Notes: generated by a model from the sequence alone, not told the origin. A DNA stretch of 64,000 bases from Heteronotia binoei (GCF_032191835.1 NC_083237.1:9610001-9674000), one strand, 5' to 3'; positions 1 to 63,259 are shown, numbered from the stretch's first letter. A program made the numbers and translations.

Positions 1-3000
1 TCTTTTATGATTTTCGATTGCTGTCCTTTGACAAATATCCTTCTCCGAATTTGTTGGAAATTCCTCAGTAAGGAATGATGATTTCATTTCCTGCTCTTGA
101 TGGCTTTTAACCTTGACCGATGTTTTTAATACGTAATAGGCTCTTCAAAGAACATGTAGGCTTGGTCCAGCGAGCACTTTTATTTTATTTAACCTGCAGT
201 CTTCCCTGCGTCTATTGGCTGTGCTCTTTCACAATGGGAATGGCATATATTTTGATAGACAAGGGAATGGAGGTGGGGATAGAGATTTTGTGTGTTCTTT
301 TTTATTATTTAACAACTTTGGGTGTAGCTTGATTGCATGCTCATTTCTTTTTGTAATCTATTGTTATGACATTAAAGGTTATTGGAATTGGAACTGGAAT
401 TGGGTGTAGCTTATTAAGTTGACGTGAATGTATAGGGGTGTAAAACATCGAATGAGATGTACGGTGTAAGAGATTCTGCCCCCCCCCCCCAATTGCATGC
501 AAAGTAATATGGAAATATTGTGAAAAGCTACGATAAAGATAACAAAGTTTAAAAAAATAACTCTGTGCAGACTTATTGGGAAATCCTATTTTAAGAATTC
601 TGGAAAAAGTCAGAGTGGGGGTAGATGAATGAATGAAGAATCAAAAGAGATACCGAAATAATTGATACCAGTGCTCAGGATATTACAGAACAGCTGTTAG
701 ATGCCATGGCTTTTTAGTTCTCTAAACAGGGACTTTAACCAAATTCAAGACTGTATATTTCTTGAATTATATGCCAACAACTGACTAATTTCAGTGAGAG
801 AATAACTGAGACTGTCTTAGATATAGGTTTGTTCAAAATGTGGTTCATATGATATTTTCAGTTTGCACAAAATATGCCTTCTTAAATCTTTTGTGCACTA
901 TTTATTTATATCTCACTCCCTCGTCCTCAAACAAGATTTGAGGCAGCTTCCATTTATTTCCCGATTATTTTATGTAATTAAACCTATGTAATGCTTCACA
1001 AATGGTTTATAATGGAATTTTCACAATGCTTTCTCCACATGAGGATTGCCAACCCAACTTTATGGTGGGAGCTTTAAAGAGTTAAATTAGTTTGCTCTGG
1101 GGCCATTTTTCCTGAGATAAGAGAAAATTGTGTGAGCCTGAGGTTAAAAATCTGTGAGCTAGCTCACACTAACTAAGCTTAGAGTGAACACTGTGAGCAA
1201 TACAATTTTAAATATAACGTATCAGTTTTAGACGACAAATGGTTGGCATTCTGATGTCAGAATTCCTTGGGCAGAAGTGGGAGATGCTTACTAGCTCAGA
1301 AAAATACCAAATGAAAAATTGGTAATGAAAATGAAAAAAAATGAAAATACATCTTCTATTGAGGCACAAAAGTGAGAATTAGTTCAGACAAGGATCATGT
1401 TCAGGTAACGTAGTGTATTATGGAATTCTTCTCTAAAACAGCATTTAACTCCTTTTCAAGTATGGTGACAAAGTTTTACCAACACATCTTGACCTTGGCC
1501 TTTGCTGTTCATGAGATCAATCAGAACCCCAAGATCTTGCCCAATGTTACTCTTGGGTTCCACATCTGTGACAGCTACTACAGCAAAAGGATGACCTACC
1601 GTACCACTCTGGATCTGCTCTATAAGCTGCATAAATATTTTCCCAACTATGAATGTGTCATCCAGAAAAAAACAATGGCTGTCATTGGGGGACTTGGCTG
1701 TGATATCTCCTTCCAGATGGCAAATATTCTAGGTCTCTTCAAAATACCACAGGTAGGGGAGAACAAACAATATTATTTGGGTAGATCCAAATGGGCAGCC
1801 GTGTTGGTCTGAAGCAGTAGAACAAAGCAGGAGTCAAGTAACACCTTTAAAACCAACCAGTTTTTATTCAGAACGTAAGCTTTCCTGTGCTCTCTTAAGC
1901 ACGTTTCATCAGACCTGATCCCCTTGTCTGATAAAGTATTCTCAAGAGAGCACACGAAAGCTTACGTTCTGAATAAATATTACTTGGGGGAATTACTGAA
2001 AGCAGAGCTGAGTCATGAACAGGAGAATTCTATCTGGCTGCTTAAGGAATAAGTTCACATTGAAGTTTGTTACTTAGGAAAAGAATCCGGCCCCTTCCCG
2101 CCCGCGCCGACTTCAGGCGGCTTTAGGGCGGGGGCCGAGTTTGCCTCCCCGGATGGAGCGAGGCAACGGCCTCTTCATCCGGGGATCCTGAGGGCGTAGT
2201 CTTCTGGGGCTTTATAAGCCCGACCACGCCCGAGGCCACGCACTTCTGCTGGCTGTTTTGGCCCACCCTCCCACCCTGCAATAGTACAGGCTTCTCCGGT
2301 CGCCGTTTTTTCGGGGCCAGGTAGGAATTTTTTCATCTCAACTGATTGGCTCGCGTTGGGATGTTTTTCGCCTACCTTGTACTGCTGCTTTGAGGTTGGG
2401 TTGTTGTTAGGTAACTTTATTTGGCAGGACTTGAAGTCAGGTTTGTTTTGGTGTGCACCCACGGTTTTCCCAGTTTAAGGGAAGTAGCGGGGGACGGACG
2501 GCAGCTGGGCTCTACGGCTCTCTGCTGTCTTTCCCGCTACAGGGTTACCTCATCTGGAGAGCCGTCCCTGGGTGGGCGGCTGGGCCATTTTGAGGGGATA
2601 CCCGACCGCTGCCGGCCTGGCAACTGCTGGTTTTAACCGGCTGCTGCTGGGGGCTGGGTGGCTCGCCCCATCCGGTCAGGGAATGGGTTTTGGAGTTCCC
2701 TTCACCTGTCCGGTTAGTTGTTAGGTTGCCCCAGGCTGTTGGTTCAATAAAGTTGCCCTGTTTTATATCCATATACTGTGTTGTCTCGTTCTTCCAACTG
2801 GGGGGGCAAATAGAAGTTCTGCATTGTAAGAGTACTCCATACTAGATAGGAAAGGCAGTGTAAAGCCTTCTTGCTAACTGTCCTAGCCAGATGGAGAGAG
2901 ACTGTAGAAAGCATGTCCAGCAGTCATGGTGGAAACAGGAAGAGGACAAGAGGAGGGGAGTGATTAAAAAGGAAGGAACCTCTGAGAGTATTGTTTTGCA

Positions 3001-6000
3001 TAAAAAAGGGACAGAAGCAAGTGTGGACAAATATCAGACAGAACCCTGTCTAGTCTTTTTCTAACTCTTTAATGCTCTCCCTTGAGATTATGAGGCATAT
3101 GCTAACATTAAGTGACATTGTACAGTCCATTGCTTCCAACACATATCTTATGTATCAGATGAAGGCAGAGATATGATTGCCCTAAAATAGTAATTCTTAC
3201 CAGAAGAACCACTTTGAATGAAAAGTTGCTTCAGACAAGGGCGACATTAGCAAATCGCTTCTTCATGACTATTCCTCTGAAATGTTACCACATTTGCATA
3301 ATCTAAAAAAAAAAAAAAATACAGCCAGAACATCCTTGAGTTGAAATTTTGTCAACCTGAAAATTCCTTCTGGACATTTTCTTTCCACAAACACATGGAA
3401 ACACACCAAATTTCTTCCTGGGTCTTCTCTAAGATACCTTCACATTTCCTTTTAGCTTACATATGGCCCACTTACTCAAGAGGAGAATGACTTGATACAG
3501 TCCCCTTCCTTTTACTCCATGGTGCCAAATGAAAACCAGCAGTATATGGGCATTGTTCAGTTGCTCCAGCATTTTGGATGGACGTGGGTTGGGCTTTTTG
3601 TTGTGAATGATGACAGTGGAGAACATTTCTCACAAGTATTGGGGCCACTGCTTTTCCAAAATGGTATTTGTTTGGCCTTTATACAAAGAATAAATAACCA
3701 AGCCCACTGGAATAAGCTTGAAGAAGTTCAGGATTTAATTTCAAATGTATTTCAGTCTTTAGCTGATAGTAAGGCTAGAACATTTATCCTCTATGGAGAA
3801 TCTAGAGCTATTATTTCACTGATCACCCTTATAGCTCTAGGAGATTTTGAATGGGAAGAAAATGCATCATTAAGAAAGGTGTGGATCACAACAGCACAAG
3901 CGGATTTTGCAATGGTCGCCATCCAATGGGACTGGAATTATGAATTCTTCCATGGGGCCATTTCCTTCACAGTTCATGCAAAGGAGCTTCCAGGCTTCCA
4001 GAAATTTCTTCAAGATATCAGACCTGATTGGACTAAACAAGACAGTTTTTCCAAGGAATTCTGGGAGCAAGCATTTGCCTGCTCTTTTCTAAATTCCAGT
4101 GATGACATGGATGCCTACAAAGCATGCACTGGGGAGGAGAAGCTAGAGAGTCTCCCAGGTCCTGTTTTTGAAATGCACATACTTGGCCACAGCTATAGCA
4201 TCTATAATGCTGTCTATGCCATAGGCTATGCTCTGCATGCCATTTACGAGTCTCGATACAAACACAGAGAAGTGGTTGGTGGAAAAAGAGTTGACCTTCA
4301 AGATATACAGCCCTGGCAGGTAACATTTTCACAATTCCATTGCACACCCCCCCCTTTTGTTCCTTATATGGGAAGACAACACGGTATTCTGGTAGGGCTG
4401 CCACCATCCCACTGGTTCCTGAGGATCAGCTGGCCAGCAAGGGGATAGGAGGGAGGCCTAGGTTACATCACTAGCAGCATGTTGATGTCACTTCTGGCTT
4501 GTACTGGAAGTAATGCCATCATATCAGCAATGTCACAGTGACACTCTGGGATCTGGGAAAAAATTCTATGGTAGAAGTCATTTTTATGATGACATTATGA
4601 AGTAATGTCATCAAGTTATGACTTTATAATAAAGCTCTCACATCAGGGCAAAAGCTCTATCATAAAAATGACTTCTACCATAGAATTTTTTCCCAGATCC
4701 CAGAGTGTCACTGTGGCATTGCTGATAGGATGGCATTACTTCCAGTACAAGCCAGAAGTGATGTTGCCACATTGCCAGCAATGTCGTCTGGGTCTCCCTT
4801 CTGCTCCTAGTAAGTACCCCCCCCCTTCCACCTGGCAACCCTATATTGTGAGAAAAGGAACCTATGCCTTATTGCAATGTCGCATTGTCGATCTATCCAG
4901 TTCAGCATGGTAAGTTGCTATTAACTTTCTAGAATCTCGTGTGAAGAAAGATTGTTCCACCCAGCATCTTCTCTGCAGTTCTTTTCGCTGAAGTGTAGTG
5001 CTCTATCAACAAGCCATAGTTCTGCCTCCTTTTCTTTCTACTCAACTGAGTCAAATCAAAATGTAGACCTGATGATTATGATGGTGCAGTCTTTTTTGTT
5101 TGTTTGTTTTTAGAGGTTGGATCGGATCGGGAGAAGTGTTGGGAGTGTGAAGCAGGAGAACTTTGTGTGTTCTCAGCCCCCATTATTGTACTCAATCACT
5201 TGAAGGTTAAGCAGGGCTTTCGTTGTAGCAGGAACTCCTTTGCAAATTCCAATCCTCCTGGAGCTTACAGGGCTCTTAGTATAGGGCTTACTTAAGCTCC
5301 TGGAGGATTGGCTACATTAGTGAGGTGTGGCCTCATATGCAAAGGAGTTCCTACTACAAAAAAGCCCTGAGTTTAAGTCTTCTAGCATAGCAGACTTGCT
5401 TGTTCTGCAGTCAAGTTTGATGCAGTTGAAAGAACTAGGGTTGCCGAGTCCAATGCAAGAAATATCTGGGGACTTTGGGGGTGGAGCCAGAAGACTTTGA
5501 GGCGGAGCCAGGAGACATTGAGGTGGAGCCAGGAGCAAGGGTTTGACAAGCATAACTGAACTCCAAAGGGAGTTCTGGCCATCACATTTAAAGGGATCAC
5601 ACACCTTTTAAATGCCTTCTTTTTGTTGGAAATAATGAAGGATAGGGGCACCTTCTTTTGTGGCTCATAGAATTGGACCCCCTGGTCCAATCTTTTTGAA
5701 ACTTGGAGAGCATTTTGAGGAGAGTCATCAGATGCTATGCTGAAAATGTGGTGCCTCTATCTCAAAAAACTGCCCTTCCAGACCCCTAGATACCCATGGA
5801 TCAATTCTCCATTTTACCCTATAGGAATCAATCTCCATAGAGAATAATGGAGTGCCCAGCAGACATCCCCCCCTTGCTTTCTGATGACCCTGAAGTGGGG
5901 GGAGGGCCTCCAAACCAGGGGATCCCCTGCCCCCACCTGGGGATTGGCAACCCTAGAAAGAACAGCATAGTTTATCTACATGATTTTCTTTTTAAAAACA

Positions 6001-8908
6001 TAGCATTGAAGATCCTATGGTACTGAAGATCCTATAGCAATGAAGATCCTGTGAATTTAGGGAGAGGTATTTGTGAATTTCCTGCATTGTGCAGGAGGTT
6101 GGACTAGATGACCAATCCAACTCTATGATTCTATGATAACATGAAGAGTTCAGTTAGTTATAATTCCTTCATTTTTCTTTCATCCAGCTCCACTCATTTC
6201 TTCAACACATTTTGTTCAACAACTCGGCTGGAGAAACATTGTCCTTTAATGAGAAGATGGAAATGGGGACTGGATTTGACATCACAAATCTGGTCACGTT
6301 CCCAAACAGGTCTGTTCAGAGAGTGAAAGTTGGAGAGGTGAAAGGCAATGCCCAGGAAGGAAAAGACTTCATTATTCAAGAGGATCGAATTGTGTGGCAG
6401 AAAAGTTTTAACCAGGTATTTCTTTATATTTGCTTACTTCTTTTAAACCTAGGGCCACCAGGTCTCCTGCTACAACTGAAGACTCTCTCTAACAGCCCCC
6501 TGTCTCCATTGTCACTTGGTAAGCCAGAGGGGAATATTGAAAAAAAAATCATTGTCATGTAAATAGTATTTGGTCATCTTCATGTCAAATCAAGAAGTGA
6601 CATCATGCCACTCTAGGAAGCTGCACATCCTTCAATGATTCAGCACGAAATCTATGAAATATTAGAGCGCGATGATGTCATGTCAAGTTTCGCCTCAGAA
6701 ATTATGTCACACTATCAACATGACAGAACTGTGATGGCTCTGCACCCTATTCTTCTGTGGGATACTAGCTATCAACCAGTAGTTGGCAACTGTATTTATA
6801 CACCACTTTTCTCCTGTATGGACCCAGCCCCCCCCCCCCCCAAGTGGCTCATGGTTTCCTATTATCACAACAACTTTACTAAGTAGTTAGGTGGAGAATG
6901 TGAAACTGGCTCAGCATGATTCCATGACAAAGTGAGGATTCAGACCTAGGCTCCCTCCATACAACATCCATTACACACATGGCTTTTTTATCTTGGTGCT
7001 TGTGGGGGCACAGTGGGAGGACTTCTAGCCCCACTGGTGGACCTCCGCTCAGGTTTTTTGTCCACTGTGTGACACAGAGTGTTGGACTGGATGGGCCATT
7101 GGCCTGATCCAACATGGCTTCTCTTGTGTTCTTATGTGACACAGAGTGTTGGACTGGATGGGCCACTGGCCTGATCCAACATGGCTTCTCTTATGTCCTT
7201 ATGTGACACAGAGTGTTGGACTGGATGGGCCATTGGCCTGATCCAATATGGCTTCTCTTATGTTCTTATGTGACACAGAGTGTTGGACTGGATGGGCCAT
7301 TGGCCTGATCCAACATGGCTTCTCTTATGTTGTTATGTGACACAGAGTGTTGGACTGGATGGGCCATTGGCCTGATCCAATATGGCTTCTCTTATGTTCT
7401 TATCCATGCAGGTTTCTGAGATGTCAAAGTGGACCCCCTTCTACCTTTCCCACCAGTGAAAAAACCTGTTTTTTCTCCCAACTCAATACCCTTCATGATC
7501 AGGATAACAATAGTGGATTGTTACAGGGGTAAAGGGAGATGTTCTTTCACTCTGTCAATGGTTTAATCATACATTGTCAGATGAACGCTTAAATAATGTC
7601 CAATATAGCCTGCCCTAAACTTTTTTTCATTGTTTTTGATAGATAGTGCCCCTTTCTGTGTGCAATGATTACTGCCTGCCTGGTTATCAGAAGAAAAAGA
7701 AGGAAGGAGAGAAATTTTGCTGCTATGATTGCATTCCATGCCCAGAAGGAAAGATTTCAAACCAAAAGGGTAAGTGATGCAATCCTAAACATAATAACAT
7801 CATTTTAAACTATGGAGGTCTTGTCTTTTTCCCTGCTTCATATGTAGAATTTCCCCCTCCATTTATTTTGTTCCTTTCTGGCTGAGCAGCCCCTTTATTT
7901 ATTTATTTTCGTTTTTGAAATATTACGGCTGTCCCAACCTGCCACATTATTATATTTTGATACTGGTTCAGCCCAGGGACTTGAGGGAAGAGACAAAAAA
8001 TCACTTCTGGTTCTATTTTATCATTTTCAGTAGATATTTCTGAAAACGGCACACAAGAGGCTTTTGAAAAATAAACAAAATATTTTATTTAACATAGAAG
8101 GGGAAAAGGTTAGGTGGAATCAGGGGTAAAATATCTGAAGTGAATCAATAATAACTCACAGGTAACTTAGTAAATTCACAGACTGCAGTTAATACATTTC
8201 CAGCAAGTAAGAATTTTAAGAAGCTTTTTCAAGGTCTTAGAATCTTTGAGGGGAGAGGCTTCATTTTCAGTGTCTGCTAAACACTTCAGTATAAGTTTCA
8301 GAAGGCAGGGATACACTACCAAGAACCCAAATTGCTTCTCTTGAAACAAACCAGGGTCCATTCTTCTCTAGAGCCATCTCCCTTTTCAATGGAAGCAGGG
8401 AATTGCTTCTCTAAACTGGAAGCTCTATGCCTTTTTCTGGCCCAAATGGGGATCTTCAGTGATCTTTCCAATCCTCATTGCTACCTTCCCAGTCCTCAAT
8501 CTGTGCTAAACTGAATTCTGTTCAGCAGTCAATTTTCCACTCTTCTTGGACACTTTCCAATGAAATCAATTTGAGCAATCTGTCATTCAAAGGTCCTCTG
8601 TCTTTGTAAGGCATTGGCCCGTCACCGTCTATCACACATTTATACAGTTTGGTGTAGTGGTTAAGTGCATGGACTCTTATCTGGGAGAACTGGGTCTGAT
8701 TCCCCACTCCTCCACTTGCACCTGCTGGAATGGCCTTGGGTCAGCCATAGCTCTGGCAAAGGTTGTCCTTGAGAGGGCAGCTACTGTGAGAAGCCTCTTA
8801 GCCCCACCCACCTCACAGGGTGTCTGTTGTGGGGGGAGAAGATATAGGAGATTGTGAGCCTCTCTGAGACTCGGAGATTCAGCGTAGAGGGCGGGATATA
8901 AACCCAAT

Positions 8909-8966
<58 letters not shown>

Positions 8967-10310
8967 CTTAAGAGCTGTCAAACAGTTCCTTACATAAACC
9001 CTTAGACTTCAATGTTTTAGGTGGTATAACTGGATTACACTGGTAGTACACCACACTTTCCAAAGTGGTGATAATACTGATGACCATTAACCAAGTGGCA
9101 ACTGACTACATGTTAGTGTGGGGTTTCATCGGGCCAGAAGGCTAGGGTCATATGGTCATGGGGGTCAAAGAATCCAGTGTGTTTCATTGCTGAGAGTTCA
9201 GCCAATCAACTCTGGACCATACATGTCATGCAATTTAGTGATGCACATTCATTTGTGAGTCTAAGCTAAAACCCACAAAGTGTTAATTGCATGAGGAAGC
9301 ATAAAGTGTATTAGATTTCTTTAACATTCAAAATGGCTTTATGAATTTGCTGTAAAGACTGGCATTATATGCTTTTTTTTTTGTTCCCCTCTTCAGACTT
9401 GGATGAATGCACCCAATGTTCAGAAGATCAATATCCAAGCAAGGACCATGACCAATGCATTCCAAAAATGATAAGCTTTCTGTCTACTGAAGAACCTTTG
9501 GGAATCAGTTTAGCCTCTATTGCAGTTGCTTTTTCCCTGTTCACTTTCTTGGTGCTTGGAATATTTATAAAACACAGAGATACCCCCATTGTCAAAACCA
9601 GCAATAGGGACATTACTTACGGTCTCCTGATCTCCCTCCAACTTTGCTTTCTCTGCCCCTTGCTCTTTCTTGGAAGACCTAGAATGGTGACCTGTTTCCT
9701 CCAAAAATCAGCTTTTGGCATCATCTTCACAGTGGCTGTTTCTTGCATCTTGGCCAAAACCATCACTGTAATTGTAGCTTTCATGGCCACCAGACCAGGG
9801 TCCAAGATGAGGAAATGGGTGGGGAAAAGACTGACCAATGGCATTGTTCTTACCTGCTCCCTTATCCAAATGTGTGTTTGTACAACGTGGCTAGGAACCA
9901 CTCCCCCATTCCCAGACGTGGACACCAAGTCAATGACTGAACAGATAATTCTGCAATGTAATGGGGGATCTGCAATCATGTTTTATATTGTCCTAGGCTA
10001 TTTGGGCCTTCTGTCCATCATCTGCTTGACTGTGGCTTTCCTAGCCAGGAAGTTGCCAGACTGTTTTAATGAAGCCAAATTTATCACCTTCAGCATGCTA
10101 ATTTTTTGCAGTGTTTGGGTGTCTTTTGTTCCAACCTACCTGAGCACCAAAGGGAAACACATGGTGGCTGTGGAGATCTTCTCTATCTTGGCCTCCAGTG
10201 CTGGATTACTAGCTTGTATCTTTTTCCCAAAATGCTACATTATTCTTCTGAGGCCAGAGTTAAACAAGAGCAAGCAGCTCATGTGGAGAAAGAAAAAAAT
10301 TGCCCTGTGA
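1..10310 (+). CDS. Vmn2r: V2R gene A (vomeronasal type-2 receptor, class C GPCR); exon 1 truncated by window start; visible part intact
   Basis: Exons <1-67, 1461-1752, 3456-4319, 6188-6415, 7643-7769, 9397-10310. All have AG/GT boundaries and consistent phases (2,0,0,0,1). Motifs: [29 protein letters not shown], Cys-rich CCYDCIPCP, 7TM with [14 protein letters not shown]. Confidence 0.95.
1085..1193. mobile_element. hAT-type MITE fragment (CAGTGTTCCCTCTAAG family), one end only
   Basis: Ends CTTAGAGTGAACACTG; internal sequence matches the complete copies at 49179 and 57624. Confidence 0.65.
1790..1978. mobile_element. Penelope-like element terminal fragment with inverted repeat
   Basis: TTTATTCAGAACGTAAGCTTTCCTGTGCTCTC (1863-1894) is inverted at 1946-1977. 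The GAAAGCTT..GTTGGTC..AGACCAAC motif recurs at about 48330-48410. Family call is from recalled reptile Penelope termini. Confidence 0.55.
2081..2809 (+). mobile_element. Short GC-rich non-coding element (solo-LTR-like or tyrosine-recombinase retroelement derivative) in V2R-A intron 2
   Basis: Starts AATCCGGCCCCTTCCC, has internal GGGCCAGGTAGGAATTTTT and AATAAA, ends TGTCTCGTTCTTCC..TGGGGGGGCAA. Homologous to 59212-59968 and to the ends of 55452-57012. No TSD found. Confidence 0.7.
4393..4843. mobile_element. hAT-type MITE with long internal palindrome
   Basis: TIR TAGGGCTGCCA/TGGCAACCCTA; degenerate 8-bp TSD TATTCTGG/TATTGTGA; about 105-bp internal inverted arms at 4481-4590 and 4660-4770. 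Confidence 0.75.
5212..5369. mobile_element. hAT-type MITE (CAGGGCTTTT family)
   Basis: TIR CAGGGCTTT/AAAGCCCTG; 8-bp TSD AGGTTAAG/AGTTTAAG. Confidence 0.85.
5436..5955. mobile_element. hAT-type MITE (TAGGGTTGCC family)
   Basis: TIR TAGGGTTGCC/GGCAACCCTA; perfect 8-bp TSD GAAAGAAC; same family as 27735-28285 in opposite orientation. Confidence 0.9.
6041..6137 (+). mobile_element. CR1 LINE 3' end (ATGATTCT tail)
   Basis: Matches the 3' end of the longer CR1 at 37878-38526; ends CTCTATGATTCTATGAT. Confidence 0.8.
7064..7402 (+). repeat. Five tandem copies of a 67-bp unit derived from a CR1 3' terminus
   Basis: Unit TGTGACACAGAGTGTTGGACTGGATGGGCCATTGGCCTGATCCAACATGGCTTCTCTTATGTTCTTA; GACAC recurs at 7071, 7138, 7205, 7272, 7339. 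The same sequence terminates the CR1 at 39610-40026. Confidence 0.9.
8645..8968 (+). mobile_element. tRNA-derived SINE with (CAT)n tail
   Basis: A-box-like TGGTGTAGTGG, B-box-like GGTCTGATTCC, 3' GAGGGCGGGATATAAA then about 19 CAT repeats; many copies in the window. Confidence 0.9.
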
Positions 10311-10433
10311 TATGTGTGCCTTCAGTAGTGCCTACAGAATCTATATGGTGGGCTTTTTCAAGAAGCAGGCTAGGGCTACCCTATATGTCAATCCATTCCA
10401 TTCCATTATTTTTTGTGTCATCTCTATAAGTAT

Positions 10434-10742
10434 TTGAAGGGCTGTCACTTAGAGGAGGGCAGGGAGCTGTTTCTGCTAGCAGCAGAGGCGACAGCTCGCA
10501 ACAATGGGTTTAAATTAAGGGTGGGGACGTGGGAAGGTATCGACTGGATATTAGGAAAAAGCTTTTTTTAGTGTAAAGAGTTGTTCAATAGTGGAATGAA
10601 GGTGATGCGCTCCCCCTCACTGTCAATCTTTAAGCGGCAGCTGGACAAACACTTGTCAGGGATGCTTTAGGCTGATCCTACACTGAGCAGGGGGTTGGAC
10701 TAGATGGCCCCTATGGCCCCTTCCAGCTTTATGATTCTATGC
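10434..10742 (+). mobile_element. CR1 LINE 3' fragment
   Basis: Degenerate RT C-terminus (GAAGGGCTGTCAC..) followed by GGTTGGACTAGATG..ATGATTCTATG. Confidence 0.8.
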
Positions 10743-10834
10743 TTACAATAAAAATATTGTTGGCGATGCCATGCAAATGTTCTTTTGTTGTTGCTGTTTA
10801 TTTGTTTAAAAGTGTGGCAGCATATTCTTACATG

Positions 10835-11099
10835 CAGGGCTAGTTTGGTGTAGTGGTTAAGTGTGTGGACTCTTATCTGGGAGAACTGGGTTTGATTCCC
10901 CACTCCTCCACTTGCACCTGCTGGAATGGCCTTGGGTTAGCCATAGCCCTGGTAGAGGTTGTCCTTGAAAGGGCAGCTGCTGTAAGAGCTCTCTTAGCCC
11001 CACCCACCTCACAGGGTGTCTGTTATGGGGGAGGAAGGTAAAGGAGATTGTGAGACACTCTGAGACTCTTCGGAGTGGAGGGTGGGATATAAATCCAAT

Positions 11100-11144
<45 letters not shown>

Positions 11145-11343
11145 TTCTTCTTCTTCTTCTTCTTCTTCTTCTTCGTAGCAGGAGCTCCTTCACATATTAG
11201 ACCACACCTCCTTGATGTAGCCAATCCTCCAAGAGCTTACAGGGCTCTTCTTACAGGGCCTACTGTAAGCCCTTAGAGGATTGGCTACATCGAGGAGGTG
11301 TGGCCTAATATGCAATGGAACTCCTGTTACAAAACGAGCCCTG
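10835..11343. mobile_element. hAT MITE (CAGGGC family) with a tRNA-SINE (about 10841-11173, +) nested in its left TIR
   Basis: Perfect 8-bp TSD CTTACATG at 10827-10834 and 11344-11351; SINE with (CAT)n(CTT)n tail begins directly after CAGGGC. Confidence 0.85.
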
Positions 11344-11782
11344 CTTACATGTTACCATAAAGGGATACACATACCTGTATGCCCCAGCCCTATCCTTCTC
11401 TATTATCACTGCCTTGATGATTTTTTAAAAGGGTGAGGATCAACCCATGCTGGTTGCCCTGGGCTTCTGGGAGGAAAAGTGCGATAGAAATGTGATCAAA
11501 CATTTAAGCAAAGAGATACAGGCAGGGATGGAATTTGTAGGGATATGGAGAACATTGCAGCCGAAAACATTGAATTCAGGAGGGGTGTGTGAGAGAGGAT
11601 CGTTTGATGCATGGTCAGATTCAGTGCAGTCAGCATAGTCTACCCTTCCTCTTTCTGTTTATAGAGTGTCTGCAGCCAATGACGGTTAGAAACTGCAGCC
11701 CCGGTGCAAGTGAACGTTAGCGCCTAGTAAGCCACAAGCTCATAGCCCTCTTTTTGAAGACATGCCGAGTCACCGTACCCCT

Positions 11783-11810
11783 GGTATTTGTCCTGCTTTT
11801 GTACACTGTG
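11783..11810 (-). other. Recombination signal sequence of VH-1 with a 12-bp spacer
   Basis: Minus strand: heptamer CACAGTG (11810-11804), 12-nt spacer (11803-11792), nonamer ACAAATACC (11791-11783). Confidence 0.9.
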
Positions 11811-12857
11811 CACTTCGAGCACAGAAGTACATGCCGGAGTCTCCTGTCTGCATGCCTCTCATCTCTAAATAAAGCTGGTTCTTGGAAGTGTCTCTGGAGA
11901 TGGTGAGGCGATTTTGCCGGGAGCCAAGGTAGTGCTTTCTGTCATCCCAAAACACGAGACACAGCCATTCCAGGCCTTTCCCTGGGGACTGACGAACCCA
12001 GCCCACTGAATCCCCACTGTCAGTGAGGGAGAATCCATAAATGTAGCAGGTGAGCTGAAGGGTCTCCGATGGTCTGAGCTGCACTGACCCAAACTGCTTC
12101 AAGTCCACTGCAGACTGGACCCCTGGAAAGATAGAGGATGATGAAGAAGATATTGGATTTGTACCCCACCTTTCACTCTGAATCTCAGAGTGGCTTACAA
12201 CCTCCTTTACTTTCCTCCCCCACAACAGACACCCTGTGAGGTGGGTGGGGCTGAGAGAGCTCTTCCAGAAGCTGCCCTTTCAAGGACAGCCTCTGCCAGA
12301 GCTATGGTTGACCCAAGGCCATTCCAGCAGCTGCAAGTGGAGGAGTGGGGAATTAAACCCAGTTCTCCCAGATAAGAGTCCACACACTTAACCACTTAGC
12401 AAGAGCTATGGCTGACCCAAGGCCATTCCAGCAGCTGCAAGTGGAGGAGTGGGGAATCAAACCCGGTTCTCCCAGATAAGAGTCCACACACTTAACCACT
12501 TAGCAAGAGCTATGGCTGACCCAAGGCCATTCCAGCAGCTGCATGTGGAGGAGTGGGGAATTAAACCCAGTTCTCCCAGATAAGAGTCCACACACTTAAC
12601 CACTTAGCAAGAGCTATGGCTGACCCAAGACCATTCCAGCAGCTGAAAGTGGAGGAGCGGGGAATCAAACCCGGTTCTCCCAGATAAGAGTCTGCGCACT
12701 TAACCACTACACCAAACTGGAAAAGGTCCATTATGAAAAAGACCTGGATCTTAAAAGAAGCAAAAGAGAAACCAGGATGGATGAGGTTGTCTCCTTGAAA
12801 AAGGCACTTACAGGGTGGAACAGTGAACAGAACAAAGGCCAGGAGCACAGCATACAT
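11811..12857 (-). CDS. IGHV: IGHV segment VH-1 (clan II / IGHV2-like); open frame but atypical RSS and promoter
   Basis: Leader exon 12857-12812 ([21 protein letters not shown] donor); V exon 12122-11811 with [31 protein letters not shown]. Intron enlarged to 689 bp by a SINE. Octamer degenerate (plus strand ATTTGTTT at 12973). Confidence 0.93.
12131..12720 (-). mobile_element. tRNA-derived SINE with four tandem 104-bp copies of its 5' part, inside the VH-1 intron
   Basis: AGAGCTATGG recurs at 12298, 12402, 12506 and 12610. Confidence 0.9.
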
Positions 12858-18922: not shown

Positions 18923-19393
18923 CTCTTCTGGCACAGTAATAAGTGCCGGTGTCTCCTGCCTCCATGCCTCTCATCTCCAAATAAACCTCGCTTTTGGAAG
19001 TGTCTCTGGAGATAGTGAGCCGGCTTCTCAGGGAGTCCAGGTAGCGCTTGTCATCATCCCAATAGACGAGGCACAGCCACTCCAGGCCTTTCCCTGGGGG
19101 CTGACGGATCCAGCTCACTGCATACCCATAAGAAGTGAGGGAAAACCCAGAAACAGAACAAGTGAGCCGGAGGGTCTCTGATGGCCTCAACTGCACTGAC
19201 CCAGGTTGGCTCAAGATCACTGCAGACTGGACACCTGGAAAGCAGGAATGGAAAAGTCTGTTACCCACAAGAACAACAACATGGCTCTTAGAAGTAGCAA
19301 AAGGGAAACCCAGTTGAATGAGATTATCTCCTCCAAGAGATACTTACAGGGTGGAACAGTAAAGAGCACAAAGGTCAGGAGTACAGAGTTCAT
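18923..19393 (-). CDS. IGHV: IGHV segment VH-3 (clan II / IGHV2-like), apparently functional
   Basis: Leader 19393-19348 ([15 protein letters not shown]); 113-bp intron; V exon 19234-18923 [57 protein letters not shown]; canonical 23-RSS. Confidence 0.95.
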
Positions 19394-27463: not shown

Positions 27464-27466
<3 letters not shown>

Positions 27467-32802: not shown

Positions 32803-32843
<41 letters not shown>

Positions 32844-49800: not shown

Positions 49801-51128
49801 GTGTCTCTGTGTGTGTACACACCCCTGTGCTTAAATGTCATGGTGACCTCTGGCAATTCTTACAAGGGCATGGATAACATTCAGAGAAGTGGCTTAATAG
49901 CCTGCCTCGGCCTCCCAAGCTTGGTATTCCTTGGAGGCCTCCCATTCAAATACTTCCTAAGGTTGCCCAGCTTAGATTCCAAGATCTGAGAAGATAAAGC
50001 TTGCTTGGGCTATCCAGGTTAGGGAGGTGAACACTTGCACATATCAAATCAGCAACCAGATGTCAACATGGAGAGAGTTCGCACACTGTTGTGATATCAC
50101 AGAAGATCACAGAATCATAGAATGGAAAGGAACCTCCAGGTCATCTAGTCCAACCACAAAATGGAAATTGGTTTTAAGTAACACGTCGTCTATAATTGAG
50201 AATCCCTTTCTTCCTTTTGTTTTCAGGCATGGATGACTGTTTCAAATGCCCAGATGATCAATATCCAAGCAAAAATCAAGATCATTGTATTCCCAAGAGG
50301 ATAACCTTTCTATCTTATGGAGAACCTCTAGGGATTGGTTTAGCCTTGGTAGCAGGCTGTTTCTCCTTCATCACAGCTTTTGTACTTGTAATTTTTATTA
50401 AACATAAAGATACACCAGTAGTCAAAGCCAACAACAGGGATATTACATACCTTCTGCTCATCTCCCTTCTCTTTTGCTTTCTCTGCTGTTTCCTGTTTCT
50501 AGGGCAACCAAGGAAGGTGACCTGCTTCCCCCGTCAATCATCGTTTGCCATTATCTTCTCAGTGGCTGTTTCTTGTGTCTTGGCCAAAACCATCACTGTG
50601 GTTTTTGCTTTTATGGCCACAAAACCAGGGTCCAGTATGAGGAAGTGGGTGGGGAAAAGAATGAGCAACTCCATTATCCTTTCCTGCTCACTTACTCAAG
50701 CAGGCATTTGTACAGCATGGCTAGGAATCTTTCCCCCTTTCCCTCAGTTGGACACACGTTCATTGAAGGAAGAGATCATAGCAGAATGTAATGAAGGGTC
50801 TGTGACCATGTTTTATATTGTTCTGGGCTACATAGGACTTTTATCTCTTGTAAGCTTAACTGTGGCATTCCTAGCCAGGAAGCTGCCAGACAGTTTTAAT
50901 GAAGCCAAGTTCATCACCTTCAGCATGTTGGTGTTTTGTAGTGTCTGGGTGTCCTTTATTCCAACTTATCTGAGCACCAAAGGAAAATACCTGGTGGCCG
51001 TGGAGATCTTCTCTATCTTAGCCTCCAGCGCAGGGTTACTGGTCTGTATCTTTTGCCCCAAATGTTACATCATTCTTCTGAAGCCTGAGCTAAACAAGAA
51101 AGAGCAATTATTTAGGAGAAAGGATTAA
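40839..51128 (+). CDS. Vmn2r: V2R gene C, complete and intact (2625 nt, 874 aa)
   Basis: Exons 40839-41050, 44103-44394, 44923-45786, 47318-47545, 48851-48977, 50227-51128. Signal peptide [24 protein letters not shown], Cys-rich domain, 7[23 protein letters not shown]. The exon sum is divisible by 3 with no internal stop. Confidence 0.95.
41180..41468 (-). mobile_element. Sauria SINE, near full length
   Basis: (ACCTTT)-type tail on the minus strand; TSD-like CAC(G/A)GTGAA; empty site in paralogue D (CATGGTGAAGGCTAG near 58730). Confidence 0.85.
41845..42085 (-). mobile_element. Sauria SINE, 5'-truncated
   Basis: Homologous to 41180-41400. Confidence 0.85.
43090..43720 (-). mobile_element. 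L1-clade LINE 3' fragment (ORF2 C-terminus)
   Basis: ORF 43702-43265 [28 protein letters not shown], typical of the L1 ORF2 Cys/His C-terminal region. Confidence 0.75.
44418..44575 (-). mobile_element. Bov-B (RTE) LINE 3' end
   Basis: GTTGTTCAGTC..GTCCGACTCTTTGCGACCCCATGGAC..CACGCCAGGCC matches the recalled Bov-B 3' terminus in reverse. Confidence 0.85.
45865..46107 (+). mobile_element. Sauria SINE
   Basis: GGTTGACTCAGCCTTCTATCCTTCCGAGGTCGGTAAAATGAGTACC..GCTTGCACAGGGGACCTTTCCTTT. Confidence 0.85.
46200..46600 (+). mobile_element. tRNA-derived SINE (composite, with duplicated tail)
   Basis: Body 46296-46552 plus partial tail copies on either side. Confidence 0.8.
47645..47925 (-). mobile_element. 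tRNA-derived SINE in V2R-C intron 4
   Basis: Reverse complement of the common SINE; flanked by a CCA(A/C)ATATGAA duplication. Confidence 0.88.
48155..48285 (-). mobile_element. 5S rRNA-derived SINE (SINE3-like), degenerate; further copies near 35665-35725 (+), 49885-50025 (-) and 63925-64000 (-)
   Basis: TATTGACCAGGGCTGACCCT..GCTTCTGAGATCAGAAGAGATTGGG resembles the reverse complement of 5S rRNA (TACTAACCAGGCCCGACCCTGCTTAGCTTCCGAGATCAGACGAGATCGGG). Confidence 0.7.
49179..49372. mobile_element. hAT-type MITE nested in a minus-strand tRNA-SINE (about 49095-49552)
   Basis: TIR CAATGTTCCCTCTAAG/CTTAGAGGGAACACTG; TSD CCCGTGAG/CCTGTGAG. Confidence 0.88.
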
Positions 51129-53409: not shown

Positions 53410-54953
53410 AGGCCGGTCTCAAATTTGCCCTTCTTGGGCAAACTTATTGAGAGGGCAGTGGCGAGGCAGCTACAGACTTTCCTGGAGGACGCTTCCGTCC
53501 TTAACCCACTCCAGTCCGGCTTTCGCCCAGGTCACGGGACGGAGACGGTGTTGGTTGCCCTGGTAGATGACCTTCAACGGCATCTGGATTGGGGTGGCTT
53601 GGCAGTGCTGATGCTGTTGGACCTATCGGCGGCGTTTGATACGGTTGACCATCGGTTACTGACTTGCCGCCTCGCCGACGCGGGGATTCAGGGGCTGGCC
53701 TTGCAGTGGCTTTCCTCTTTCCTTGAAGGTCGGGGACAAAGGGTCACGATTGGGGGGGGAGCTATCCCGGAGGCACACACTTAATTGTGGAGTGCCCCAG
53801 GGAGCGGTTCTCTCCCCAATGTTATTTAACATCTATATGCGACCTCTTGCCCAGATTGCCCGAAGGTATGGGCTGGGGTGTCACCAGTATGCTGATGACA
53901 CCCAGCTCTATCTACTTATGGACGGCCAACCAGTCTGCGCCCCAGAAAATCTAGATCGGGCACTACAGGCCATGGCTGAGTGGCTCAGACTGAGTGGACT
54001 GAGACTGAATCCTGCGAAGACAGAGGTCCTTTGTTTGGGCCGTTGTAGACCGGGGGGGGGGGGGAAATCCCCCTGCCGGCTTTTGACGGTGCGCCGCTGA
54101 CGGCGGCAGACAAGGTCAAGAGCCTGAGGGTGCTACTGGAGCCGTCCCTAAAGATGGAGGCTCAGATAGCAACCACTGCCAAGTCCGCGTTTTTTCATCT
54201 TAGACGGGCAAGGCAGTTGGCCCCCTTCCTGGACCGCGACGACCTAGCAACAGTGATCCATGCTACGGTCACCTCGAGGTTGGATTACTGCAATGCCCTC
54301 TACATGGGGCTGCCCCTGTGCTGGACCCGAAAATTGCAGCTGGTGCAGAATGCCGCGGCCCGGCTGTTATTGGGCCTCCCAAGGTGGGGGCACATTCGGC
54401 CGGGTCTTCGGGCTCTGCACTGGCTTCCAATAACATACCGAGTCCGGTACAAGGTGCTGGTTATTACCTTTAAAGCCCTATATGGCCTGGGACCTGCATA
54501 CCTGAGGGACCGTCTCTCCCCACATGTTCCCCAGAGGGTACTGAGGTCTGGGACTCAAAACCTTCTCACCATCCCTGGGCCTAAGGAAGTCCGTCTCAAG
54601 ACAACCAGAGACAGGGCCTTCTCTACAATGGCCCCCACATGGTGGAACCAGCTGCCGGAAGAGGTGAGGGCCCTGCGGGATCTTACTCAGTTCCGCAGGG
54701 CCTGTAAAACAACCCTCTTCTGGTTAGCCTACGCCTGACTAGATAAAGCTAGCTTATCAGATTTTAGTGAAATATACTGCATACTTTAATGTTAAGATTT
54801 TAAGATTTTTAGATTTTTAAATGCTTTGACTTTTTAAATGTAATAACTCTGTACCTTGTTTTATTGTTTATCATTTGCTGTGAGCCGCCCTGAGCCATTT
54901 TATGGGAAGGGCGGGATATAAGTTATGGAATAAATAAATAAATAAAATAAATA
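53410..54953 (+). mobile_element. L2-clade LINE, 5'-truncated; reverse transcriptase with frameshifts
   Basis: Three frames (53425-53784, 53723-54100, 54130-54738): QSGFRPGHGTET, LLDLSAAFDTVDH, GVPQGAVLSP.LF, YADDTQLY, RAFS.MAP.WWN; (TAAA)n tail. Confidence 0.95.
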
Positions 54954-58398: not shown

Positions 58399-61300
58399 AT
58401 GGTGAGGCTAGTGTTGCTGCTTCTATTGCCTCATGTGGCATGTGGAGTGAAGACTTTAAAGTGTCCTGTTTGTGATCCGCTCCCTCTTCCCCATGAATGG
58501 TACCAGTCAGGGGACCTGCTTATTGGTGGGATTACCTCTCAGATCCTTTGCACCTTTCATACATTTTATTTTGTGACCAATCCTTTGCAGGACATGTTGG
58601 GGGCAGCAGAGTAAGGATTTTTTTCCCCTCCTTCCCATGTCCTGGGAGCTTGATGTCTATAACCATTTGTACTCAAGGTTACAGGAGATACAAAGAAAGA
58701 ATATGCCAGTCCAGTCAAAGATTTTCTTTCATGGTGAAGGCTAGTGGGAAAAGACATAGGTTTGAATCTTTTTTGCTTAGTCTCTGTAGCCTCCACATAC
58801 AGGTCCCATTATCTCCAACAGTCCTTTGGGTGCTCAAAGGGAACCCCTCCTTTCTTGTACACCAAATTGTGTCAGATCCAACCCATAGGGTAGAATAGAA
58901 ATATGCAAGCATTTTTGCAAGTCATTTTAGTCCATTACAGATTCAAAACATCTTGTTACTAAAAATGGAATTCATATGATCAGCCATTCTACACAAAACT
59001 TTACCTGTCTCCTCCCTTGCTAGGTTTGCCAGTTTTTACACTTATCATTCTACCTGTCCCTTTAGTATCATCACAACAAGGTGATGTGATTTGCCTCCAT
59101 GTCATGAAAGCATCCTCCTTCCATTTTCTTATATTAAGCCTTCATTTAGGCCATTTTTCCCCCCTGGCTAGTTGGCAATCCAGCCTCCTGGTAAGACTAA
59201 CCACCGAGTGTCAAAATTCGGCCCTTTCCCAGCCGGGCGGTCCATGGACCGCTGAGGCTGGGGGCCGTCCATTGCCTCCCCGCGCGGATGAGAGGCAATG
59301 GTTCCTTCCAAGGGTGGGGGCTAGGAGCGGCCTTATAAGGCCGCTCCCGCCCCAAATACGCAGTTCCATTTCGTTGTCGGCCCGCCCACCCACCCGTCAA
59401 GCAGTGCAGGCAGAGGCTGGTCGCTCGTTCTAGGGGGCCGGGTAGGAATTTTTCGCCCTCAGACGTATTGGCTTTGTCTGGGGGTGTTTTTGCCTACCTT
59501 GCACTGCTGATGTTCTGGTGCTGGCAATTGGATTGGCGGAGCCGTTATAGGTCGGTCACTGGCAGTTTGTGTTGGCATTATGTTTCGGGGATTGGTGAGC
59601 TCCCGTTGCATCGCGCCGTTTTGGTGCATGGCTTCCCTGGGGAACTGCAAGCTGTACGGCCCAAGGTTGCTCCAGGAAGGCTTCCGATCCCGGCACGCGG
59701 TGAGTGTCCGCATCCTAGGCTGCAAGGCTGTGGGGATGGCGGAGCTCAGGTGTGGTGATCATGTTGCCGGGCCGGCCGGGTCTGAGCCGTTTGGTTGGCT
59801 CATACCCGGGGCTCAGGGGGCTCGCCCAGTTTCAGGTCTAGGAGGTGGTCGCTTGACCCCTGGCTTTACCTGTTCCCCATGTTTGCCCTTGCCGTTGAGT
59901 TTAATAAAGTGGCCCTTCAATCCAATCTTGTGTATGTCTCGTTATTCCGCCTGGGGGGGGGGGGGCAATGTGCAGTTTCTATATGTGGTTTATGAAGTAG
60001 AGGTTCTTTCAAGAGCAACAGAAAGAGGTCATGTATACATGTGTCACCTTACAAGTTGTTGACTCTGGAGTTATCTCAATGTCATTCTCTTAGAAATCTG
60101 ACAATGTAAGAATTGAAGGATGGGGGCAGGGTGATAACGGAAATTAAAAAAAAAAACACTGAGAATGAGAGAAACTAACAAAAAGAACCCTCTGAAGACA
60201 ATTATATCTTGTGAACTGAGGTTTTGATGAACCGGAGCACACTTAGATGATTAGCAAAAGGAAATGAAAGCCCTTCACAGCACATATATGCTTTGATTGG
60301 TTATAAGTAGTGCGTTGCTTAAAAAAAGAAAAAAAGAGATCAGCTGTGAAGTGCAAGCAATGGAATAGATAGTATTTGTGCATCAAAGAGTTATCCCAAA
60401 AAAGTTATTTTGACTCCATACAAAAATATTTATTAACTCAGAACTCATCCATAACAAAGGGTTTATTTACCAATTAACTGATACAAGATATACTTTATAA
60501 GTCTTATATAGGCAGGTTTTATAAAGAAATGATGTAAAGTATTTTTTTAAAAATTTTTATCTGCAGCATGATGACAAAGCTCTACCAACATTGTCTCACA
60601 TTGGCATTTGCTGTAGATGAAATCAACAAGAATCCCAATATTTTGCCAAATCTCACTCTTGGGTTCCACATCTTGGACAGCTACTACGATGCAAGGATGA
60701 CCTATCAAAGCACCCTGGACCTGTTCTTCAGAGCACATAGACTTGTCCCCAACTACAAATGCAAGAGCCAGAAAAAAATAATTGCAGTCATTGGGGGACT
60801 CAGCTCTGAGGTATCCTACCGAGTGGCAGAAATTTTAAGTCTCTACAAAATTCCACAGGTATGATCAGTATATGGGAGTGTAAATTGACATGATAACACT
60901 GTTTCTATTGGAGTAACTTCAGGTTTAAAGAGTATGAATGAAATAAAATTAAAGAAATACTTGGTATTTTGAGGAATATCGTGAATTGAATTGCTTTGTG
61001 AGAGGGAAAAATAATGAAGGATGTGTCCAAAATGTTCCTTAAAGCTCTTTTCATTCCAGTGGGCTTTCCCCAAGAACTGAACTTCAGGTAATCTAGTTTG
61101 AACTCCACTTGACCACTATTACAACCAATTTTTTTTATTTGCATAAAGAGATATAAAACACATCAAAACACTTCATATTTCATCTGTACAACATGTATAA
61201 ATTTCTTTTCAGGTCACTTATGGATCATTTGCTCCAGAAGAGAAGAGCATGACTCAGTCCACTTCCTTTTTCTACATGTCCCCGAATGAATCCCATCAGT

Positions 61301-63259
61301 ATATGGGGATTATCCAATTGCTTCTCCACTTTGGGTGGACATGGGTTGGGCTTTTAGCTGTGGATGATGACAGTGGGGAACATTTCTTGAACACTATGGA
61401 GCCATTGCTTTCCAAACATGGGATCTGTTTGGCCCTTACAGGAAAAATTCCTAACCGAGCAAATTGGGATACTTTGGTAGACCTCAATGCTTTATCATCA
61501 AATATATATCTACCATTTATGGATGCAAAAACAAGTACATTTATCCTCTATGGAGAATCTAGAACTCTTGTAAGATTGATCTCTTTGATGTACCTAGGAG
61601 ATCCTGGGTATAATACTTCACTTGAACGAGTTTGGATTATTACTTCTCAGGTTGATTTTGCAATAACAGGAGTTCAAAGAAGATGTGACTTGCAGTTCTT
61701 TCATGGTGCTATTTCCTTTACAATTTGTTCGAATGAGCTTCAAGGGTTCCACAAATTCATTCAGCTCATAAAACCTTGTTATTCACCAGTAGATGGTTTT
61801 CTCAAGGAATTCTGGGAACTAGCTTTTGATTGTTTGTGTCCAAATCCTAGAGTACCAGTGGATGTCAATGATGCATGTACTGGAAAGGAGAAGCTAGAGA
61901 GCCTCCCAGAACCTTTATTTGAAATGCGCATCACTGGCCACAGCTATAGCATTTATAACGCAGTCTATGCTATAGCACATGCATTGCATGCCATGCTCTC
62001 ATCAAGATCCAATCTCAGAGCAATGGGAGATGATGAAAAAATTGAAAATCAAGATTTCCAGCCCTGGCAAGTAATGAAATGAAATACTTGAAATGAAATA
62101 ATCATGACCAGAATAGAATAGTCAAAATTCTCCCATATAAGATTAACTGAGATTAATGGATTTATTAATCATTTAAAAAGAGGTTTTTTTAAAAAAAAAT
62201 GACATTGACTTCTATATTTGGACCATGTGAGAAAGTAATATTAATTTATTATTTAATGCATTTATACCTCACTTTTCTCCCCAGTGGGGACCTAAGGAGA
62301 TTAACATCATTCTGCTTTCCTAGACTTTTTTTCTTTTTCTTTTTTTAAAACACACTGTCCTGTTAGTTAGATTAGGCTTAGAGAGTGTGACTGACCCAAC
62401 TAACCCATTGAGCTTCCATAACAAAAGTTGAGATTCACACTCAGGTCTCCCAGATATTTGCCTGACACTCTTAACCTCTGCACCATACTGACTCCCATTA
62501 TGTATGTAAATATACGGTTTACCATCCTTGTCAATTCATGTGTTTTTTTTTTTGTGCCTTTGATTTTAAAAAAAAAAAGTAGATGAATCAAGTGGTTTAA
62601 GGCAGGACAAGTCCCTATTTTTCCATACCTTTTCGCAAAGAGTGTTAATGACTAAAACTGGATCTCACTAATCCATTTTGAATCCATTTAGAAGGCTTTT
62701 TGTGCTGCCTTTCCCCTTAGTTCAGCGTGCAAAGGAGCAGTCAGAATATTAAAGCAAATTTTAAAATGTATGTATGTAACAGAGAAGAAAAGTCGTCGCA
62801 TGTTGGGTGGGTGAAGGGACAAAGAAATCTCCCTGGGGAAAGAATTAAGGTTGATGCCACAACTGAAATGTTCCATTCTTGGCTTACCACTGATCTATCA
62901 CAGAAGGTGGCACCTCTCAAAGCAGGGCATTCAATAATAGCACTAGTGGGCAGATTGGTCCATGCGGGAGTAGGATGTACTTGGACAGTGAAATACTGAC
63001 ATGTTTTCTCCCCCCCCCCCCTTTAAATTAGCTCCACCCATTTCTTCAAGGCATTTCATTTAACAACTCAGCTGGAGAAAAAGTGTCTTTTAATGAGAAC
63101 ATGGAAGTGGAATCTGGGTTTGATATAACAAACCTGGTCACATTCCCAAATCAATCTTTCCTTCGAGTGAAAGTTGGACATTTAGATCTTAATTCTTTGG
63201 AAGGCAACAAACTCATTATTCATGAGGATCTAATTGTGTGGCAAAAACATTTTAGCCAG
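58399..63259 (+). CDS. Vmn2r: V2R gene D, exons 1-4 (exons 5-6 lie beyond the window); close paralogue of C
   Basis: Exons 58399-58610, 60567-60858, 61213-62070, 63032-63259; AG/GT boundaries, open frame. Confidence 0.93.
59212..59968 (+). mobile_element. Short GC-rich non-coding element, relative of 2081-2809, in V2R-D intron 1
   Basis: Starts CAAAATTCGGCCCTTTCCC, ends AATAAAG..TGTCTCGTTATTCC..TGGGGGGGGGGGGGCAA. Empty site in gene C intron 1 (ACTGAACATCCAAATTTGCAGTTT, about 42758-42782). Confidence 0.75.

Follow-up and report, generated by a model that had tools for sequence, protein, structure and literature searches.

Immunoglobulin VH segments alternating with vomeronasal V2R genes on a chromosome of the gecko Heteronotia binoei and at loci of other lizards

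Can the V segments of an antibody heavy-chain array alternate with the genes of a chemoreceptor family along the same stretch of chromosome and, if they do, is the array a working one? The question is raised by the window studied here, i.e., the whole stretch of 64,000 nucleotides that was analysed, which corresponds to positions 9,610,001-9,674,000 of Heteronotia binoei CM063339.1 (68.1 Mb, GCA_032191835.1) in + orientation. It contains four six-exon genes of vomeronasal type-2 receptors (V2R-A to V2R-D), all on the + strand, and, between the V2Rs, five immunoglobulin heavy-chain variable (IGHV) segments (VH-1 to VH-5) plus one orphan VH promoter/leader, all on the - strand. This gene order, with its strands, had been put forward in a sequence-only reading of the window; exon models and Pfam matches bear it out, and the interleaving of VH with V2R in the window is confirmed as an observation. 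The analysis leads to the conclusions that: (i) the layout is inherited, not misassembled, and is a real feature of lizard genomes; (ii) it presumably predates the gecko/skink split; (iii) the array is, with somewhat better than even probability, part of the active immunoglobulin heavy-chain (IgH) locus.

Along 40 kb or more of the window, solitary V2Rs and groups of one to three VH follow one another in turn. The geometry is repeated: one V2R on one strand, then one to three VH on the opposite strand, with the recombination signal sequences (RSS) of the VH pointing at the 3' end of one V2R and their promoters at the 5' end of the next. V2R-B is located between VH-3 and VH-4, i.e., a gene that is not an antigen-receptor gene stands between V segments and not merely beside the array. 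All four VH/V2R transitions (10310-11783, 19529-20945, 32133-34180 and 37414-40839) are free of assembly gaps. The RSS end of a VH and the 3' end of a V2R are separated by 1.5-2 kb, and the VH promoter and the first V2R exon lie head to head at 1.4-2.1 kb (19529-20945, 38774-40839); the same geometry is found at two Gekko kuhli loci (L002 and L011, see the table).

The five V exons of the - strand match the Pfam V-set domain with E values of 1e-11 to 1e-14. Each of the five segments has an ATG leader of 40-49 nt, a GT donor, an AG acceptor, an in-frame V exon and the conserved Cys/Trp/Cys. VH-1 and VH-3 belong to clan II (VH2-like), VH-2, VH-4 and VH-5 to clan III, and the closest named matches are immunoglobulin heavy-chain V regions and antibody heavy chains. 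A usable RSS with a 23-nt spacer (23-RSS) is carried by VH-3, VH-4 and VH-5. RSS-like matches number seven in 128 kb (both strands counted), and three of the seven abut a VH exon exactly. The octamer is perfect (ATGCAAAT) only before VH-3 and VH-4; it has one mismatch (ATGTAAAT) before VH-2, VH-5 and the orphan leader, and none is found before VH-1. The sequence-only reading had credited VH-3 and VH-5 with an intact leader, splice sites, 23-RSS and octamer-type promoter: this stands for the first three in both segments, and the octamer is perfect for VH-3 and one mismatch away from it for VH-5. Judged by these features, VH-3 and VH-5 are predicted to be functional and VH-4 is probably so.

The two remaining segments have open frames and faulty signals. 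VH-1 has a 12-nt spacer and a leader intron of 689 nt enlarged by short interspersed elements (SINEs), two SINE-like copies standing there in tandem; it is probably unusable in V-to-D joining. It must be noticed that, by the 12/23 rule, a VH with a 12-RSS such as VH-1 could join JH directly. VH-2 has a defective heptamer (CATGGTG). The orphan promoter/leader, 86% identical to the region upstream of VH-5, is a relic. Three apparently usable VH, two open frames with bad signals and one relic make an ordinary mix for an IGHV array.

The best matches of VH-3 among solved structures are antibody heavy chains, including antigen-binding fragments (Fabs) of IGHV2-5. This segment, of clan II and of the 'YWDDDKRY' type, is unusually conserved: at the amino acid level it shares 82-83% with VH of turtles, 87% with partial VH of tuatara and painted turtle, and as much as 89% with one of Gekko kuhli. 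For VH-5, the amino acid identity reaches 84% with a VH of Varanus and 75-79% with VH3-type genes of other squamates. In the protein sets searched with VH, neither VH-3 nor VH-5 had an identical match, and no H. binoei protein appeared.

The V2R exon models were obtained by tblastn with full-length V2R references, a search for splice junctions and spliced translation. The Pfam domains ANF_receptor (Venus-flytrap), NCD3G (nine-cysteine domain) and 7tm_3 are present in the window V2Rs, and the spliced models of V2R-C and V2R-D hold the complete V2R domain set. The plan is the same from V2R-A to V2R-D: six coding exons with GT/AG sites, a large third exon and the seven-transmembrane (7TM) part in the last one (212, 292, 864, 228, 127 and 902 nt in V2R-C). 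V2R-C is intact, as had been claimed from the sequence: its complete six-exon model encodes 874 aa with signal peptide, Venus-flytrap, cysteine-rich domain and 7TM. V2R-D is complete at 872 aa when exons 5-6, located 1.4-3.3 kb beyond the end of the window, are taken from a locus of the same record that overlaps the window base for base (L005). Exons 2-6 of V2R-A form a stop-free frame of 808 aa, and its exon 1 tail resembles the end of V2R-B exon 1. The latter exon has 216 nt vs. 212 in V2R-C and V2R-D, i.e., a net +1 frameshift leading to a stop, with T5/C4 runs at 21025; V2R-B is thus probably either a pseudogene or affected by a homopolymer sequencing error in exon 1.

The ratio of nonsynonymous to synonymous substitution (dN/dS) is 0.26 for A/B and 0.37 for C/D, and it is lower in the 7TM part; the window V2Rs therefore appear to have been under purifying selection since their duplication. 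Taken with the three VH that have intact coding sequence, promoter and 23-RSS, these values agree with the earlier statement that neither family is merely decayed. The best 120 matches listed are all named vomeronasal type-2 receptor (62-100% identity). A/B and C/D fall among gecko V2Rs in a tree made of V2Rs only; by the naming of the matches and the identity levels, the window V2Rs would group with those of squamates rather than with CaSR, TAS1R or mGluR.

The public V2R gene models for the window are truncated. The NCBI entry 'vomeronasal type-2 receptor 26-like [Heteronotia binoei]' (P0271) is 100% identical to V2R-C over exon 6 (7TM), and its gene lies at CM063339.1 9,654,104-9,661,128, i.e., window 44104-51128. 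Its length (515 aa) is that of the 874-aa model without exons 1 and 3, and its Pfam Venus-flytrap domain is shortened. A second H. binoei model (P0375, 425 aa) is 100% identical to V2R-B across exon 6 and spans only the rear part of the gene.

Table. Features of the window and loci of other squamates (window positions unless a chromosome is named; RSS given as heptamer/spacer length in nt/nonamer).
Feature	Position	Strand	Parts, signals and remarks
V2R-A	1-10310	+	exon 1 tail 1-66, cut by window start; exon 2 1461-1752; exon 3 3456-4319; exon 4 6188-6415; exon 5 7643-7769; exon 6 9397-10310
V2R-B	20945-32133	+	exon 1 20945-21160 (216 nt); exon 2 23321-23612; exon 3 23977-24840; exon 4 26251-26478; exon 5 30453-30579; exon 6 31235-32133; exons 2-6 open, 802 aa
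V2R-C	40839-51128	+	exon 1 40839-41050; exon 2 44103-44394; exon 3 44923-45786; exon 4 47318-47545; exon 5 48851-48977; exon 6 50227-51128
V2R-D	58399-64000	+	exon 1 58399-58610; exon 2 60567-60858; exon 3 61213-62070; exon 4 63032-63259
VH-1	12857-11783	-	leader 12857-12812; V exon 12122-11811; RSS 11810-11783
VH-2	15718-15093	-	octamer-like ATGTAAAT 15718-15711; leader 15598-15550; V exon 15432-15132; RSS 15131-15093, CATGGTG/23/GCAAAAACC
VH-3	19529-18884	-	octamer ATGCAAAT 19529-19522; leader 19393-19348; intron 113 nt; V exon 19234-18923; RSS 18922-18884, CACAGTG/23/ACAAATACC, nonamer with one mismatch
VH-4	34966-34180	-	octamer ATGCAAAT 34966-34959; leader 34843-34795; V exon 34516-34219; RSS 34218-34180, CACAGTG/23/GCAAAAAAA
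VH-5	37414-36829	-	ATGTAAAT 37414-37407; TATAAA 37389-37384; leader 37299-37260; intron 85 nt; V exon 37174-36868; RSS 36867-36829, CACAGTG/23/GCAAAAACC, nonamer with one mismatch
Orphan VH promoter/leader	38774-38615	-	ATGTAAAT 38774-38767; leader 38654-38615; without V exon
Assembly gap	25568-25728		V2R-B intron 3; exons 3 and 4 flank the gap in order and in frame
Assembly gap	34531-34763		VH-4 leader intron; leader and V exon ordered and in frame across the gap
SINE-like copies	8645-8925, 10825-11120, 12125-12396, 12295-12708, 25200-25475, 32380-32676, 46290-46552, 47646-47925, 63420-63695
Decayed LINE reverse-transcriptase remnant	53425-54738	+	Pfam RVT_1, two overlapping frames; between V2R-C and V2R-D
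Gekko kuhli L002	CM122952.1, 59.39 Mb		VH VH VH / V2R
Gekko kuhli L011	CM122952.1, 60.25 Mb		V2R / VH VH / V2R
Gekko kuhli L012	CM122952.1, 60.64-60.66 Mb		VH only
Tiliqua scincoides (skink) L006	CM068528.1, 131.12 Mb		V2R+ / VH- VH- / V2R+ / VH- VH- VH-
Podarcis muralis (wall lizard) L009			V2R V2R / decayed VH / V2R

Is the layout peculiar to this window? Loci of other squamates were fetched around VH and V2R proteins and scanned with the VH and V2R exons of the window. Across geckos, a skink and a lacertid, the layout recurs in Gekko kuhli and Tiliqua scincoides, and a remnant of it is found in Podarcis muralis. The two families are on opposite strands in all five loci holding both. The strongest case is the Gekko locus L011, which is orthologous, gene for gene, to window 1-32 kb (V2R-B / VH-2, VH-1 / V2R-A). 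Its right V2R is 86% identical to V2R-A in the 7TM exon (A vs. B: 81%) and its left V2R 83% identical to V2R-B. Its two VH have 84% amino acid identity to VH-2 and 78% to VH-1, the closest window paralogs being at 72-73%. A V2R tree was also tried for strict orthology; it gives the gecko V2Rs as one clade and those of Tiliqua as sister clades, with weak deep support, and it is the comparison of the L011 block that is informative instead.

The Gekko orthologs also date the defects described above. The ortholog of VH-2 has CACAGTG/23/ACAAAAACT; that of VH-1 (L011 12897-12950) has the heptamer and nonamer of VH-1, but a 23-nt spacer. The 12-nt spacer of VH-1 is thus explained by an 11-bp deletion in the Heteronotia lineage and, since both Gekko orthologs carry a canonical 23-RSS, the defects of VH-1 and VH-2 are recent Heteronotia losses.

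The V2R-bearing chromosome of Gekko kuhli (62.4 Mb) has VH from both clans, II and III, spread over 1.27 Mb or more. V2R are found among VH at two of the three sampled sites, and these mixed sites lie up to ~0.9 Mb apart. At the third site (L012), one VH is inverted relative to its two VH neighbours and would join by inversion. Among the VH of the Tiliqua locus, an octamer is found in two, and one carries a CACAGTG heptamer followed by a 24-nt spacer. Another VH of this locus (L006 6640-6991) ends in YYCVR followed by 12 extra nt, CACAGTG, a 12-nt spacer and ACAAAAAGG; its sequence may reflect either a second spacer loss or a germline V-D fusion keeping the D-type signal.

The VH/V2R association is widespread, but uneven along the arrays. 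Sampling outside the window covered five V2R-anchored loci, including one elsewhere in H. binoei; two of them contain VH, vs. an expectation of ~0.2% for a random 25-kb V2R locus, a value taken from our own estimate of ~100 VH in a genome of ~1.6 Gb.

Does the window belong to the working IgH locus? We consider this the best available reading, held at somewhat better than even confidence. The window would be a piece of a megabase-scale region of the gecko chromosome in which IGHV segments and V2R genes are interdigitated, each gene keeping its own promoter. The VH segments, as members of a working IGHV array, would be used in B-lineage cells only, via RAG cutting at the 23-RSS, and the V2R genes in vomeronasal neurons only. 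Whenever a distal VH is joined to DJ by deletion, intact V2Rs would thus be excised from the chromosome of the B cell, presumably at no cost since B cells do not use V2Rs. The placing of D, J and C segments to the left of the window, as suggested earlier, follows only from the RSS orientation under deletional joining. At the RNA level, the searches of sequencing runs gave a single library contig, of 167 nt (depth 3.3), which is 100% identical to the VH-3 V exon at 18953-19119; in the same run, the unique flanks of VH-3 and the VH-2 exon have zero cover. H. binoei IgM sequences are given, without coordinates, in a preprint on Gekkota IgM (10.64898/2026.02.13.705754).

Several observations weigh against this reading: (i) D, J and C segments were not located, no JH-like motif being found in the window or in the 12 fetched loci, which are pieces of ~20 kb; (ii) two of the five RSS (VH-1 and VH-2) are faulty; (iii) only V2R are found at the H. 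binoei locus 1 Mb to the left (L008) and over the 13 kb that follow the window on its right, so that the VH may form islands inside a V2R cluster; (iv) in Podarcis lilfordi and Naja naja, one locus each, VH are densely arrayed and no V2R was seen, and the one V2R locus sampled in each of Eublepharis and Elgaria showed no VH; (v) a second Gekko contig, of 133.5 Mb, bears VH, i.e., more than one VH site may exist; (vi) the 167-nt RNA contig stops short of the leader splice and of the V-D junction; (vii) in the protein search with VH-3, the best entry derived from run assemblies is 68% identical. As to point (v), VH-3-like genes of Gekko kuhli (P0390, P0392, P0413) occur on that contig as well as on the 62.4-Mb chromosome. 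One such protein is identical on both sequences, and the records are flagged UNVERIFIED_CONTAM; the contig may hold either a second VH site or an assembly duplicate.

Points (i), (ii), (iii) and (v) would also suit the principal alternative, namely that the VH are orphons or relics, copied or left behind by segmental rearrangement and stranded as islands in a V2R cluster, with the working IgH locus elsewhere, slow decay and no deletion of V2R in B cells. The missing octamer of VH-1, the orphan leader and the clearly decayed VH between the V2Rs of Podarcis muralis point in the same direction. However, VH-3, VH-4 and VH-5 retain promoter, leader, splice sites, open frame and 23-RSS, and the Gekko orthologs have retained a canonical 23-RSS since the Heteronotia/Gekko split, which is unexpected for unused copies. 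The extent of the Gekko VH and their two clans, as well as the exact RNA match over VH-3, also argue against orphons, and true IGHV arrays hold many pseudogenes too. The orphon reading is a serious contender, though the less probable one.

A more far-reaching version of the IgH reading is improbable, though worth stating: the IGHV and V2R arrays would have formed one interdigitated domain since before the gecko/skink split, with opposite strands maintained to keep the two programmes from interfering and with jointly inherited haplotypes. Both families would need a silent, repeat-rich domain out of which one member is drawn at random; the draw would be made by RAG recombination in B cells and, in vomeronasal neurons, by receptor choice. 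B cells using a distal VH would carry a somatic deletion of intact chemoreceptor genes.

It is very unlikely that the VH-like segments serve a rearranging receptor other than IgH, whether as a VH-delta set from a lost TRD locus or as part of the extra T-cell receptor (TCR) chain locus of squamates. VH-like V genes do occur inside TRA/TRD of several tetrapods, and TRA/TRD is flanked by olfactory receptor genes. Nevertheless, the segments are most similar to antibody heavy chains and to IGHV of clans II and III, and no TRAV-like exon was seen among the open reading frames (ORFs) of the window. Moreover, TRD is absent in squamates and the V genes of the new squamate TCR locus are TRBV-like, not VH, which rules out this locus as the home of the segments (10.1101/2023.09.04.556186).

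Finally, a misjoining of VH- and V2R-bearing reads (chimeric contig or collapsed repeats), which the two gaps and the abundant ~270-bp SINE might have aided, is scarcely credible, since the transitions are ungapped, each gap falls within an intron (of a V2R in one case, of a VH leader in the other) with the exons ordered and in frame, and the same alternation is present in the assemblies made independently for Gekko kuhli, Tiliqua scincoides and Podarcis muralis, that of Gekko matching gene for gene.

How do the two families evolve within the shared region? It had been supposed that they expand and contract together. Joint duplication is not supported in the window: the self-comparison shows no V2R plus VH cassette repeat, i.e., no repeat unit holding both families. 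The only recent duplication in the window is that of V2R-C/V2R-D, the introns of which are 79-86% identical, and which is therefore a recent tandem copy of a V2R alone. For A/B and the VH pairs, similarity (70-82%) is confined to exons. At the scale of the window, what is observed is a long retention of position with independent decay. The two families would thus turn over largely independently within the region they share: VH-1, VH-2 and the orphan leader have decayed in Heteronotia, V2R-B carries a frameshift, and C/D is a duplication of V2R only.

Beside the two families, the window holds repeats. The SINE-like repeat of ~270 bp has at least 12 copies with 84-97% identity, one of them directly before the first gap. 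It is recognised neither by ARAGORN nor by Rfam; the Rfam and tRNA scans of the window gave no matches. The remnant of a long interspersed element (LINE) belongs to neither gene family, its RVT_1 match being on two shifted frames at 53.4-54.1 kb. ORFs resembling LINE tails are found at 43265-43702 (V2R-C intron 1), 38077-38430 (beside the orphan leader) and 26830-27126 (V2R-B intron 4).

What makes the locus of interest is, above all, its conservation gene for gene, together with the nature of the embedded family, which, judging from mammalian V2Rs, would itself be expressed one gene per cell. Should the array prove to be the working IgH locus, intact V2R genes would routinely be removed during V(D)J joining in lizards, and locus contraction would have to bridge receptor genes of 10 kb. 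The haplotypes of antibody V segments and of vomeronasal receptors would, if this is true, be linked in inheritance. In practical terms, the IGHV and V2R catalogues of squamates come from the same DNA; here the automated V2R models are cut short, and the protein sets searched lack the VH.

The sequence-only reading cited no earlier description of such a layout. Our full-text literature search likewise returned no account of V2R among IGHV, which is no proof since subscription journals were mostly beyond its reach; neither the immunoglobulin survey of the Vertebrate Genomes Project (VGP) nor the Gekkota IgM preprint mentions it. A figure of the Komodo V2R cluster includes unnamed 'non-V2R genes' within the cluster. 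That unrelated genes stand inside antigen-receptor loci is already known (trypsinogens in TRB, ADAM6 in IGH). What the literature searched does not contain is a chemoreceptor family alternating gene by gene with IGHV, conserved at the level of orthologs in two gecko genera and recurring in a skink.

The closest precedent is that of the trypsinogen (PRSS) genes in mammalian TRB, i.e., an unrelated multigene family between and beside V segments. Their position is kept across distant lineages, with 5, 8 and 20 copies in cattle, human and mouse, respectively (PMC2685407), and they are lost from rearranged lymphocyte chromosomes (PMC2685407, PMC8945572). The trypsinogens are gathered in two blocks, one at the 5' end and the other immediately upstream of D-J-C, whereas single V2Rs alternate with VH groups in the gecko; moreover, the embedded family is one of chemoreceptors and the array is of the IGH and not of the TRB type.

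A second comparison is offered by single genes. In the mouse, V-to-DJ joining deletes Adam6 genes that are functional. The IMGT gene order places several non-immunoglobulin genes within immunoglobulin loci, namely ADAM6 and FAM30A (IGH) and VPREB1 (V region of IGL) (PMC8945572). They are single genes or small sets at fixed spots, whereas the gecko V2Rs are a tandem family alternating with V segments.

The orphon clusters of human IGHV on chromosomes 15 and 16 are VH standing away from D-J-C among unrelated genes; they are unused, and most of the human ones are pseudogenes. Unlike them, three of the five gecko VH look functional and the Gekko orthologs retain a canonical RSS. Lastly, the olfactory receptor genes at mammalian TRA/TRD are, like V2Rs, chemoreceptor genes next to a V array; they flank that locus, whereas the multi-exon V2Rs of the gecko stand between the V segments, on the opposite strand.

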